Of a stretch of DNA of 64,000 nucleotides, positions 11,020 through 24,197 are shown piece by piece. Every line of letters starts with the position of its first letter. The stretch's first letter is position 1. A program made the position numbers and the translations under genes. Origin of the DNA: Salpingoeca rosetta (Eukaryota > Protista > Choanoflagellata); contig JAWQFM010000018.1 of the NCBI GenBank assembly GCA_033442325.1, positions 777,730 to 841,729 of the forward strand, read 5' to 3'. Below the pieces are notes generated by a model. It ran no database searches. It worked only from the letters and a program-made list of their open reading frames with translations, and was not told where the DNA came from.

Positions 11020-12313
11020 GCCAGATCTACCAGCCCATATGAACCAACAGCACTATTTTCCTCCTCCCAAGTCGTCGTCATCCTCCTCTAACACACTCTC
11101 CCTCGTCGTGACACGTGCGTGCAACCGCCCACGTCTCGACCCCCAAGATTGCCAGACGTTCGCTCCTCGTCCTGTGTTATGTTCCTCTCTACCTCCACGC
11201 CCCACGTGTTTGTGTTTTTGTTTGTGTTTGTGCCGTCTGTGGTTTTGACCTTTAGTGAGAGGATTCTTCCATCTGCCTCAGCTCCTTCCACCTTCTGCTG
11301 CTGCTGCTGCTGCTTCATATTTGCTGTTGTTCTTGTGCTGTGACACGCGCGATGGTGGCCGTGTTGTTGCAGTGCACCCATGTACCAATACGCGTGAAGT
11401 GCACGACATTCAGACGTGCTGGCGTGTGCTCGTGGTGCCGAGCTCCCCACTTCACCTCTTCTCCGTCCCTCCTCCTTGGGGGGAGGGGGTGCCTCCTTCT
11501 TGGGCTGTCGCCCAGTTTGCACTCTCCCTTTGCACCACCTCTCCCAACTTCTTCCCCTGCCCCGTTTCCCAGTCGTGATAGCTGTGTATCTGCGTTTTGC
11601 CTTCCGTTTCGATGTTCGTTTCACGGCAAACGCATCGCCTATGTGAGTGCTACCGGTTTTGCACTGATCTCGTTTGCAGCGCTGCACGTGCTTTTCTACC
11701 GCTTGCGCTCGTTCCTGCCGTCTCTTGCGCACACGATTCTCTTGTTCTTGACCCTTTTTCGTTGACCTTTCTTTGATCTCTGCTTTTCATTCGATTTGAT
11801 CTCACAATGATGATTTCTCCCCGCGTTACACCCTGCCTTCTTCGGCCATGCTTTCGTTATCACCTGCCATATGCGGCAGACACACCACAACACGATTTTG
11901 AGTTTCTCTCTTTCTTAGCTTATTTTCTTTTTTCCTTGCCTGCCTTATTTTTGCTTTGTTGGTTCGCGTTGCCGCGATCACACACCACGTGCCAGTTGCA
12001 CGACGCACGAGTGTTCTTCCGTTGCTGGTTTATCTTTGTATTGGGTGTCTGTGCCTCCTCTTAGAACTCTGCACCGTCATTTAGCGCATGTGCACATGAT
12101 TGTGGCAAGTGGGCGTTGCTTTCGTTCCGTAGTTCATTGATGCAACCATTCGGCTTACCCCATTGAAGCAACGACAACAACGACAACATGTGCGTGACTG
12201 ATGCAAGCGCGAGGCAATGTACCACGAATCCAAGAGGGTTTGTGAGTGTGTGTGTGTGAGTGTGTGTGTGTGTGTGAGTGTGTGTGTGTGTGTGAGTGTG
12301 TGTGTGTGAGTGT

Positions 12314-12389
<76 letters not shown>

Positions 12390-12409
12390 TTTAATTATAA
12401 TTTTTTTAT

Positions 12410-12509
12410 NNNNNNNNNNNNNNNNNNNNNNNNNNNNNNNNNNNNNNNNNNNNNNNNNNNNNNNNNNNNNNNNNNNNNNNNNNNNNNNNNNNNNNNNNNN
12501 NNNNNNNNN
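12410..12509. other. Assembly gap (N run) flanked by (GT)n
   Basis: Run of n in the sequence. Confidence 0.99.
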
Positions 12510-12568
<59 letters not shown>

Positions 12569-12653
12569 TGCGTGCGCGCGCGTGTACAAGAGAACGTGAA
12601 GAAGAAAGCGAAGAAGGGATGAGATGGGTGCCATCTACCCGAGCCACACCACG

Positions 12654-13528
12654 TCACAAGCGCGGATATGGGTTGCGCCTCGAGTGTAGGTGATGGTGCT
12701 GCTCCCTGGCCAACCCGTGCTTGTCGTCCGCCTGACCACGCCCCCGATCGTCTCCCCCAATCGCTCCATGACTACTCCCGTGCACTCGCCCCGGTTCAGC
12801 ATGCTCCTCGCCCCTTCGTTCTCCAGCACCACCATTGCCACCACCACGGCCACCGCCACGGTTACCACCACGTCCACGTCTGCTGCGCTGATGTTTGCGG
12901 TTGCGGCTCTTCCGTCTCTGCAGGCGATTACCATCGCCGTCACCGCGGTCACCACCACGGCCACCGCCACCATGCCGATCACCGCGGTCACGATGCACAG
13001 CAGCTGCACCACGGTGCTCGCGCTGGCTGTGGCCGTCACCATCCTCTGCATGCCGCTCAAAGTGCTGCGAGTCGCGATGGTGGTGGTGGCGGGAGTAGCG
13101 GTCGAGTGGCTGGGACGGTTGGTGCTGCAGTACATGCTGCTGCTGCTGCTGCCGCTGTTGATGCTGCTGTTGTCGATGCTGGTGCTGCTGCTGTTGATGC
13201 TGCTGCTGCTGTCGATGCTGCAGTACATGCTGTTGATGCTGCTGCTGCTGTCGATGCTGGTGATGCCGCTGTTGCTCAAACTGGAGGGGCGGCGGGTGTT
13301 GTGCATGGTGCACACGCTGCGTGGCGAGGCCACCACCACGCTCCCGTGCTTCGCCCACTGCCACATCACCACGTGGGACTTCGCTCTGTATCAGCTGCGT
13401 CAGGCTGTCTGCCAGGTCATGCACGGTGACGCTTGCCAGCCCCTCTGTCCTCGCCGCAACCTGCAGACCTTGGTCGTTCGTCAGCAGCAGCGCCTTGTCA
13501 AACTGCAGCGGGTTGTGTGTGTGTGTGC

Positions 13529-13585
<57 letters not shown>

Positions 13586-13590
13586 CGTGC

Positions 13591-13634
<44 letters not shown>

Positions 13635-15480
13635 CACACAACGATCAGCCAGTGCATGTGGTCGAGGTGCGATTCACTCTACTTGACCGCCACACACACA
13701 CACATTAACGCACATACACGCACACACACACATGTGCACACACACATGTACACACTCACTCACACACACACACACCTACCTTTGGTCTCGCAAGGCGTTG
13801 TTTTGCAAACAGGGCACACTCCATGATTCGATGGTCATTTGTCAATTGCTTCTGCTCCCACTTGGCAAACACCTGTGGCAGGTGGATGGTGTGTACGTGC
13901 ATGCAACAGGGAAGGTGAACAACAGCACCGCAGTCTTTCTCTTCACAGCCTTGAACACGAGTTATGTTTGCTGCTGCAGCAACAACAACAACAGCAGCAT
14001 CATCATCAACAGCAGCACGATGGGCCTTACCCGGTCCTGTACGCGTTGCACTTGCACCTGTGGATCCTGTCGCTCCAGCCGCCGACGCAAGAACCGAATA
14101 AACGAGCGAGCATGGTACCCGCGCTCAGTGTTGTTCTCCTGCAGTGCCGCGTGGTGCGTGTTGCACCGCGAGTTGGATGTTGGGCGTGATAATGGACGTG
14201 TGGGAATGAATGTGAGGTGATGGCCGGGTGTTTGAGTCGATGGCACAGGATGCAGTGGCAAACTGCGAGTGATCAAGGGTTCTTGAGATTGTGGCAGAGG
14301 AAGAAATATTGACTTGAGAACATTCACACACACACGTACACACACACACGTACACACACACACACACGTACACACACACACACACACACACGTACACACA
14401 CACACACACACACACACACGCACGCACGCACACATGCACACACACACACACACGCACACATGTACACACACACACATGTACACAAACGCACATGCACACA
14501 CACACCTTCATGCGCTCGAGCTCCTTCATGACGATGCGCGGGACGATGATCACAAGTGATCGGTACCAGTCCAGCAGCTGCAGCAGCGTTGTTACATCCT
14601 ACACTCACACGCGCGCGCGCACACACAAACAGTGGCAACGGTTTTAACTTGTGCAGCACGCGAGAAGAGGGCAGAACGACGCTGGATTCAGCACACGACC
14701 CACACACACCCACACACACCCACACACCCACACCCCCCCCCCCACACACACACACGCAACTGACCATTGGGTTGAGGGCGATGCACGTGTCGATGACAGC
14801 GAAAACGGTGCTGACGTCCAGCTGCGGGTTGATGCGCGCACGTGCGCTGGAAGGACTCGCCAGTTTTCCTTTGGACAGCGCGCTCGCCAGCGTATGCTCC
14901 GCAGCCAGGGGCGGAGGTGGCGGCGCACTGCGCTGTTGCTGTTGGTGTTGCGGTTGCTGTTGGGTGTGGTGTTCGTGTGGATACCGTTGCTGGCGCTGCT
15001 GTTCGTGCGTGTATTCTCCCTGCTGCTGCTGCTGCTGCTGCCCCTCCCCATAATCTGGCATGAGAAGGTGCGACCTTGGCTGGTGGTGGTGGATTTCACG
15101 GCGTGTTGCATGGGTGGCGCTGCGTGTCATTGATGGCGACACAGTGCCCGTCTCCCTGAGCCGTTGCGTCCGCACAAGCTGTGGCAGGGGTGAAGAGGTC
15201 ATTTCTCCTCCACCGATCGCGGAGTGCGACAACCCCTGTGACCGTTGCTGCTGCTGCTGCTGCTGCTGCTGGACGGATTCTTCGTGTTGCATGGCACTTC
15301 GAAGCGGCGACAGCGAAATCCCAGCAAACATCGTGTTGAGTGTCTCTGCGAGGGCACGTGCATAGTCATGTACGTGTGATACACATGCAATTGGGTGAGA
15401 ACAGAGGCGACAGCCTTTTAGACTCTCCAATGCGTCCACAACGGATGAGCCAACACGAGAGGCCTGTTTCTGACTCATCA

Positions 15481-15547
<67 letters not shown>

Positions 15548-16643
15548 GCTAACCTGCATTTGGGTCTTGGCGCTTGAGGTGCTGCAGGAGGAGGTCTGTG
15601 TTTCTGAGGAGGGACGCGGGCGCATTGTTGAGCTTGGGGCACTCGCGGAACCACAGTGCTGTCAGCGTGCCCGCTATTCTCCACAGCGACACGGGCAGCG
15701 ATTTCAGGTGCGGCTGCGTACCAATACCAAGTTCGCGCAGGCTCTTCAAGTCGCCAAGCTGTTCGGGCAGCTGTACCAAGTGGTTGTCGTCGACGTTCAG
15801 CACCTGCAGTCGGTGACACTGCGTGATGGTGGTCGGCAGCGCTGTCAATGCGTTGTGGCTCACGTCCACGACTTGGAGGCGCGGCAAGGTGTGCAGGGCA
15901 TCTGGGAGGGTCTGCAGGCTGTTGTGCTTGGCGGAGAGCCGCCGCAGCTGCGTCAGGCACGTCAGCTCATCAGGGAGCGAGCACAGCCTGTTGCGGTCCA
16001 GCACCAAGTTCTGCAGTAGAGCAATGGGCACGGGGTCGCTGAGCCAGCTCACACCATAGCCGACAGTGCGCGGGAAGTAGGCGAGGTTGTTGTCGCTGAA
16101 GTCGGCCGTGAATGTCGTGCGTGCAGCCAGCATGGCCTTGTGAATGAGGGCATGCTCATCCTCAATCATGCTCGCCTGTGCCTGTGCTGTGGCCTGCAAC
16201 ACGTCTTGCTGGATCAGTTCATACTGCTCTTGTTGTTGCTGTTGTGGTGCTTGTTCTTCCCGCTCTTGTTTCTGTCGCTGCTCCTCTTGTTTTTGTTGCT
16301 GTTCCTGGTGGTGGAATTCAGGGACATGCTCACTGTCACCCCCATCATCAGTCTCATCATCTCCCACGACAGGCCTTTGTCCAACACCAACGCTGTCCTC
16401 AACTTCCAGCCCCTCCACCTCTCGCTCTTCTCCTTGCTCTTCTCCTTGCTCTTCTCCTTGCTCTTCTTCTAGTTCGTTATTTGCTTGCTGCTGGATGTGG
16501 GCGACAATGGCGCGAATGATGTCTGCTTTGACACCTTTTGGAGGGCAGCATTTCGGCCAACCAACACCGGGCTGCTTGATCCCAAGGTCCACCGCCAGCT
16601 CCTGCAACTCAACCTTGCTCTTCTCTTCCAACTCAACCTCCAT
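12654..16643 (-). CDS. Rho_N/HeH-like + leucine-rich repeat + PIN (SWT1/SMG6-type) nuclease-domain protein with Q/H- and RGG-rich tail
   Basis: Exon 1 (16643-~15553): [26 protein letters not shown], then about 6 LRRs ([38 protein letters not shown]..). Exons ~15346-14765, 14577-14506, 14138-14031, 13872-13780 and 13502-12654 splice in phase to [73 protein letters not shown], a complete PIN signature. Confidence 0.85.

Positions 16644-16796: not shown

Positions 16797-16801
<5 letters not shown>
16762..16801. promoter_or_regulatory. Two ACTGAnnTCAGT motifs upstream of the LRR-PIN gene
   Basis: ACTGAATTCAGT at 16762-16773 and ACTGAAATCAGT at 16790-16801, about 120-150 bp upstream of the ATG at 16643. 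Confidence 0.4.

Positions 16802-24197
<7,396 letters not shown>

Follow-up and report, generated by a model that had tools for sequence, protein, structure and literature searches.

PIN_4 endonucleases such as SMG6, SWT1 and the PIN domain of Dis3 are central to RNA quality control in eukaryotes; they have little intrinsic specificity and rely on accessory modules to provide it. In the CCR4 deadenylase it is a leucine-rich repeat (LRR) domain that docks the enzyme, onto CAF1 within the CCR4-NOT complex. We take SMG6 and Swt1 as models of Mn2+/Mg2+-dependent endonucleases that act on single-stranded RNA (PMC5499597, PMC2613419); the active site of SMG6 comprises D1251, E1282, D1353 and D1392 (PMC5499597), and the defining feature of SWT1 is a HEPN dyad at the C-terminus, behind the PIN domain (Pfam SWT1_3rd, PF21693; PMC3710099). 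Here we analyse a gene of the choanoflagellate Salpingoeca rosetta that is predicted to place a PIN_4 domain behind an LRR domain. It lies in a stretch of 64,000 nucleotides (positions 777,730 to 841,729 of contig JAWQFM010000018.1, assembly GCA_033442325.1), which we call the window and whose coordinates are used throughout. The sequence evidence yields a well-supported gene model with a domain combination that is unusual but plausible. Our favoured reading, which we hold at about even confidence on sequence and analogy, is that the product would be an LRR-docked endonuclease of RNA surveillance or decay, possibly nuclear.

Gene structure and splicing

The LRR-PIN gene runs on the minus strand from 16643 to 12654 and consists of six exons in one spliced frame with a product of 937 residues. 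From the N-terminus the product comprises a head resembling SAP and helix-extension-helix (HeH) folds, an acidic/Q-rich linker, five to six LRRs, a disordered linker, the PIN_4 domain and a Q/H-rich tail with an RGG box. Exon 1 is an open reading frame (ORF) of 364 codons that extends from an ATG at 16643 to a donor in which the G at 15554 is followed by GTTAGC from 15553. All five introns are GT-AG, with lengths of 208, 166, 367, 158 and 277 nucleotides and phases of 1, 0, 0, 0 and 0, the exon borders having been chosen as canonical acceptors and donors that preserve the reading frame. The features are as follows.

Exon 1, 15554..16643, minus strand: codons 1-363 plus 1 nucleotide; start, head, acidic/Q-rich linker and LRR domain
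SAP/HeH-like head (putative), 16494..16622, minus strand: residues 8-50; helix, 'IKxPGxGWPxCCPPxG' loop, second helix
LRR domain, 15567..16109, minus strand: residues 179-359; one degenerate and five regular 23-residue repeats with a helical C-cap
Exon 2, 14765..15345, minus strand: residues 364-557; post-LRR motif, Q-rich disordered linker, 'KLASPxSARxRINP', first PIN strand
D549 (exon 2, VIDT), 14789-14791, minus strand: first PIN acidic residue
Exon 3, 14506..14598, minus strand: residues 558-588; PIN segment with E583 (KELE; 14521-14523)
Exon 4, 14031..14138, minus strand: residues 589-624; PIN helical insert
Exon 5, 13780..13872, minus strand: residues 625-655; PIN segment with D637 (TNDH; 13834-13836)
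Exon 6, first part, 13377..13502, minus strand: residues 656-697; last PIN strand and helix, with D665 (LTND; 13473-13475)
Exon 6, tail, 12654..13376, minus strand: residues 698-937 and stop codon TGA (12654-12656); low complexity, rich in Q, H, R and G
RGG box, 12837-12881, minus strand: residues 863-877

A preliminary description of this locus had read the LRR and the PIN domain as one gene, and every sequence string that it quoted is indeed present on the minus strand in a single spliced frame. We likewise regard the two as parts of one real gene on the strength of the splice phases, a collinear gap-free match to a protein of the choanoflagellate Barroeca monosierra, conserved intron positions and short introns. 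The description had spread the PIN domain over five exons; these are exons 2 to 6, and exon 2 supplies only the last ~17 codons of its length. The Barroeca protein (P0239; EukProt EP01147, 662 residues, within the 90% cluster of P0106) was predicted independently. In a global alignment the spliced model is collinear with it at 59% identity in the head, 57% in the LRR domain and 65% in the PIN domain, where 175 of 175 positions align with zero gaps; exon 4 by itself is 64% identical. Since the gap-free alignment of the PIN domain crosses four splice junctions, it validates them. When the Barroeca PIN domain was searched against the whole 55.4-Mb genome (68 contigs, in which the gene is single-copy) it found exactly exons 2 to 6 in order, with E-values from 1.1e-11 to 0.061 for the weakest of the five: residues 21-53 fell on exon 3 (E 2.6e-4), 52-90 on exon 4 (E 2e-8), 89-123 on exon 5 (E 1.1e-11) and 120-155 on exon 6 (E 8.8e-5). 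The only other match of the PIN query, a weak one at contig C14:705839-706129 (L018), was discarded as chance; the minus-strand gene there encodes a P-type ATPase (Na/K- or Ca-type).

The intron positions carry the same message. In Barroeca genomic DNA (contig L010) the last codons of exon 1 encode '...SQA', and one further base precedes GTATGA; exon 2 opens behind CCTCAG, its last residues are 'ALKPQ', and GTATGC comes next. Introns 1 and 2 thus agree in position and phase with those of the window gene. The donor of intron 1, with its position and phase, is also common to a metagenome contig from the Tara collection, and the exon-1 ORFs of Tara (P0001) and Barroeca (P0106/P0239) stop at the identical donor position and phase. 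Word shares in presumptive RNA assemblies provide indirect evidence on splicing. Assemblies X6-X11 contain 0.65-0.70 of the words sampled from the 3,990-nucleotide locus, where a fully spliced mRNA would be expected to hold ~0.67 and DNA-like assemblies reach 0.96-1.00; X6 in particular has 0.70 of the locus words and none from intron 3. Assembly X4, from the same study as X6, contains all intron-3 words and 0.75 of the locus, a difference that would fit one sample retaining intron 3 or containing pre-mRNA.

An artefact of the gene model, in which the LRR exon and the PIN exons are two adjacent genes or the tail is untranslated, would draw on the fact that the one-transcript structure is a prediction from comparative data and word shares, that an annotated protein of this genome is absent from every length-compatible homologue search and that the tail is of low complexity and not conserved. 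The compatible splice phases, the gap-free junctions and the retention of intron positions between species speak against it, as does the length of intron 1, a mere 208 nucleotides in the window and ~330 in Barroeca. With introns of 158-367 nucleotides there is no room for an internal promoter, and we consider such an artefact very improbable.

The window has a GC content of ~56% and is eukaryotic in character, and the introns are short and full of (GT/CA)n microsatellites. Long (CA/GT)n tracts occur in four of the five (for instance the CA-repeat at 13713-13759 within intron 5); intron 4 instead contains CTG/GTT repeats. Intron 1 of the Tara relative likewise opens with a GT-rich tract. The upstream neighbour (16797-17513, minus strand) carries a GAS2/GAR domain in its last exons, with a Pfam GAS2 match that passes the cut-off (E 7e-5). 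It ends ~150 nucleotides before the LRR-PIN ATG, leaving a very tight intergenic space. About 150 nucleotides downstream of the stop codon lies an assembly gap of 100 N (12410-12509) flanked on either side by long (GT)n tracts (12240-12570), and the 3' untranslated region and poly(A) site of the LRR-PIN gene may lie in or beside it.

The PIN domain and its accessory modules

Exons 3, 5 and 6 match positions 11-38 (E 0.096), 83-103 (E 0.12) and 107-131 (E 3.2) of the Pfam PIN_4 profile, in that order. Because three ordered matches point to a single family out of 24,736, the result lies far beyond chance; from per-family probabilities over the 24,736 models the joint chance is ~1e-10. The score of the whole domain is that of the Barroeca orthologue, to which the spliced PIN of the window is linked by its gap-free identity: P0239 matches PIN_4 (PF13638) with E 1.5e-19 and 71 bits against a gathering score of 21.9 bits (residues 481-616, profile positions 2-131), and also matches LRR_14 and LRR_8. 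Language-model neighbours agree: PIN_4 accounts for 89 of the 100 nearest ESM Atlas clusters, which are headed by a eukaryotic 'PINc' cluster (0.91) and include an SWT1 cluster at 0.83. The nearest solved structure by sequence is the PIN domain of human SMG6 (2hww, E 0.05), and in that alignment E583, D637 and D665 fall on the SMG6 motifs KELE, ND and TxD; a PDB search with single exons came back blank. The four acidic positions named in the preliminary description are present as D549, E583, D637 and D665 and are identical in the window model and in Barroeca, the two full-length proteins. We thus assign the domain, from its sequence, to the PIN_4 type with a complete acidic tetrad. Split between exons as it is, the LRR-PIN gene is invisible to a six-frame search of the genome for PIN_4, the only signal of which lies at contig C3:1602036-1602810 (L008/L009) and corresponds to a Dis3/Rrp44-like N-terminal PIN ('ILPDTNVILHQLDVLE', 'VILLTNDAANLKLA').

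Exon 1 matches Pfam LRR_8 (E 1.3e-13) and LRR_14 (E 4.6e-11). An AlphaFold model has six beta strands ~23 residues apart (179-306) and a helical cap, with a predicted local distance difference test (pLDDT) value of ~90; the repeats thus number five to six, close to the six first proposed. Foldseek places this model nearest to SHOC2, RSU1 and Leptospira LRR proteins at E 1e-7 to 1e-9, with LRRC8 among the best, and its sequence and language-model neighbours are LRRC40, PIRL, LRRC10/18/20/39 and RSU1. Sequence and model alike indicate a short intracellular protein-docking module of the SHOC2/RSU1 type.

The head is near-invariant in three species, including its 'GWPxCCPP' loop. Of the Rho_N/HeH head that had been proposed, the motif itself is present but Pfam supports the assignment only below threshold: Rho_N reaches E 0.012 and 16 bits in the window protein (cut-off 24.9), the Tara orthologue gives SAP at E 0.0027 and 17.7 bits (cut-off 23.9) and Rho_N at 16.8 bits, and in Barroeca the Pfam search returned no SAP or Rho_N match. 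The SAP/Rho_N match is limited to the first helix, behind which a conserved 14-residue Cys-Cys loop is inserted, and AlphaFold predicts helices at 10-19 and 39-65 with a pLDDT of 58-77. Judged by sequence and model, 'HeH/SAP-like' is a reasonable, if unproven, label.

The tail contains 41 Q, 40 R, 39 G and 34 H among its 240 residues, along with five RGG motifs, and its frame is the only fully open one in that part of exon 6. An RGG tail had been part of the preliminary description, and the box stands at residues 863-877; it is, nevertheless, lineage-specific, for P0239 terminates 46 residues past the PIN domain and the 240-residue tail has no counterpart in Barroeca.

The gene can be traced by sequence in three lineages, namely the S. 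rosetta window, Barroeca monosierra and an uncultured marine relative in Tara metagenomes. The last is represented by P0001, an ORF on seven short marine metagenome contigs (Tara and others) that is 52-59% identical to exon 1 over its full length. Head, LRR and PIN are strongly conserved; the tail and the linkers, the two of which share 21-31% identity with P0239, diverge freely. Conservation between the species extends to two short motifs not covered by any Pfam domain: one directly behind the LRR cap (residues 364-375; 15343-15308; variant 'RLTSMFGVISL') and 'KLASPxSARxRINPxL' directly before the PIN domain (residues 523-540; 14869-14816). They may serve as a linear docking motif or extend the PIN domain at its N-terminus.

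Blanks in the homologue searches are weak evidence, since these searches compare words under a length filter and a 345-residue fragment stands for the Barroeca cluster. Within that scope, the exon-1 homologue query yielded Tara P0001 as the only orthologue among its matches, the remainder being generic LRR proteins; the exon-1 profile search, swamped by giant LRR proteins, returned P0001 and P0106 as its only orthologous matches, P0106 having come to light in this search. Queries with the exon-2 tail and with the Barroeca PIN region (candidates of 364-1158 residues) were blank. A metagenome scan returned one LRR locus (L011), which is unrelated, and no contigs encoding P0239 are on record, hence no Barroeca transcript contig. 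MAFFT alignments A3-A5 placed exon fragments wrongly and alignment A6 is without exon 3.

Known nucleases and alternative readings

SMG6 (EST1A) offers the closest comparison for the catalytic domain: its PIN belongs to the same Pfam family and has the same four acidic positions and the KELE/ND/TxD motifs, from which Mn2+-dependent cleavage of single-stranded RNA would be expected. It differs in carrying an EST1/14-3-3-like TPR domain in place of the SAP-like head and the LRRs, and the likeness to this factor of nonsense-mediated decay is one of PIN sequence alone. A Pfam search of the window exons and P0239, the scope of all such searches below unless stated otherwise, detected neither EST1 nor EST1_DNA_bind; lacking the EST1/14-3-3-like TPR domain, the protein is not SMG5/6, and membership of the SMG5/6/7 (EST1) family is ruled out. 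EST1_DNA_bind matches do occur elsewhere in the genome, at contig C9:1788877-1788981 and C9:884532-884660 (L019, L020), presumably in genes of the SMG5/6/7 type, where PIN exons were not detected.

SWT1 (yeast Swt1, human SWT1), which acts in perinuclear quality control of messenger ribonucleoproteins, likewise joins its PIN_4 endonuclease to a recognition module without catalytic activity. That module is the HEPN dyad, and SWT1 has no LRR. SWT1_3rd has no match in P0239, which extends 46 residues past the PIN domain, and the corresponding tail in the window is of low complexity; a genome-wide search for PF21693 was blank and so were its controls. Without a HEPN dyad or SWT1_3rd behind the PIN domain the protein is not SWT1 either. 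For the LRR the best functional analogy is CCR4/CNOT6, also an RNA nuclease behind a short intracellular LRR domain. Its nuclease is an EEP exonuclease, however, with a fold unrelated to the PIN endonuclease, and homology is confined to the generic LRR; no EEP domain was detected by Pfam, which rules out membership among CCR4-type LRR nucleases and leaves an analogy only. SHOC2, RSU1 and the LRRC scaffolds possess the same 23-residue 'LxxLxLxxNxLxxLPxxL' repeat and match the LRR domain best in both sequence and structure; they are devoid of a nuclease, and SHOC2 has ~20 repeats compared to the five to six of LRR-PIN. The N-terminal PIN of Dis3/Rrp44, encoded on contig C3 of the same genome, is another PIN_4 domain with a similar 'LLTND' motif. 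It belongs to a separate gene with the RNB architecture of the exosome, and tblastn found no significant similarity between it and the PIN of LRR-PIN.

The preliminary description had proposed a sensor-coupled RNase, as an RNA-decay or innate-immune-like effector. On the immune reading, recognition of a foreign ligand by the LRR would set the PIN domain free, or switch it on, against foreign or self RNA. LRRs are indeed the ligand sensors of Toll-like receptors (TLRs), NOD-like receptors (NLRs) and variable lymphocyte receptors (VLRs), VLR and TLR3 chains appear lower down the Foldseek list, PIN nucleases of prokaryotes act as toxins and defence effectors (PMC5499597) and the architecture is lineage-restricted as far as the searches reached. 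The data favour a different picture: an LRR domain of just five to six repeats of the intracellular, docking SHOC2/RSU1 type, and a single-copy gene with 1:1 orthologues at 57-65% identity, neither expanded nor hypervariable in the manner typical of immune receptors. Pfam detected no NACHT, NB-ARC, TIR, death or CARD domain, no signal peptide and no transmembrane segment. With neither a NACHT, TIR or death domain nor an expanded family the protein is not an NLR-like receptor, and a receptor of the NLR/TLR type is ruled out; the sensor and immune part of the original proposal was not supported, and a sensor-coupled defence RNase seems unlikely to us. We are equally doubtful of a nuclease directed at DNA or chromatin, tethered to DNA by its head and cutting DNA flaps, R-loops or RNA associated with chromatin in preference to free mRNA. 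In its favour, DNA or nucleic acid is what SAP, HeH and Rho_N folds usually bind, the head is conserved as well as the catalytic domain and structure-specific DNases occur in the PIN-like superfamily (PMC5499597). Yet the characterised PIN_4 members (SMG6, Swt1, the Dis3 PIN and PhoH2) are RNases, and the head assignment on which the tether depends is sub-threshold. Lower still we rate a non-catalytic adaptor that would use its PIN as a binding module. SMG5 provides the precedent, being an inactive PIN_4 member that works via PIN-PIN contacts as reported in PMC12923823, but the acidic tetrad is complete in each of the two full-length orthologues, although the domain as a whole has diverged by ~35%.

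Proposed mechanism and significance

The two analogies, with CCR4, where an LRR docks a nuclease, and with SWT1, where a PIN domain is joined to an inactive recognition domain, are the reason for favouring an LRR-docked endonuclease. From an intact acidic tetrad within a PIN_4 domain one would expect an active Mn2+/Mg2+-dependent endonuclease on single-stranded RNA, as in SMG6 and Swt1. Substrate targeting would be achieved by docking of the LRR solenoid on a partner protein or ribonucleoprotein and not by a specificity of the PIN domain itself. The SAP/HeH-like head may assist by holding the protein on nucleic acid or chromatin, and in S. rosetta the RGG tail could add RNA binding. The likeliest role would be constitutive RNA surveillance or decay, possibly nuclear, as a functional analogue of SWT1; by that analogy a nuclear surveillance role is plausible.

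Several points weigh against the LRR-docked endonuclease. Its activity, substrate, partner and localisation are all predicted. AlphaFold applied to residues 466-662 of P0239 with a two-deep alignment gave a pLDDT of 43, unusable for a fold search; the Rho_N score of the head is below the cut-off; and the RGG tail, missing from Barroeca, is a predicted translation only. The co-transcription of LRR and PIN exons rests on comparative data and on word shares, the latter indirect. Length filters and swamping by LRR proteins limited the search for orthologues beyond the three lineages, and neither 'restricted' nor 'undescribed' is proven.

What is new is confined to the combination, since every component domain is already known. 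Literature searches for LRR-PIN, PIN-LRR, or PF13638 with LRR found no description (a paper on polymorphic toxin systems that names a PIN domain, an LRR and a choanoflagellate together lies outside this scope), the classification of the PIN superfamily makes no mention of LRR or leucine (PMC5499597), and none of the 100 nearest ESM Atlas clusters combines PIN_4 with LRR. 'Undescribed' here means not found with limited architecture searches. The more ambitious claim, an undescribed HeH-LRR-PIN endonuclease family, found among the nearest living kin of animals, whose LRR recognises either a ribonucleoprotein partner, as part of a new surveillance pathway, or a foreign ligand, as a sensor-coupled RNase and new innate-immune effector, strikes us as a long shot.

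A conserved PIN_4 nuclease with an LRR as its accessory module would represent a new mode of targeting for such nucleases, and transfection and genome editing in choanoflagellate hosts make direct tests possible. Should the partner of the LRR be an RNA-processing complex, the protein would be a lineage-specific decay factor; should the LRR bind a foreign ligand, it would be a novel type of immune architecture close to the base of the animal tree.

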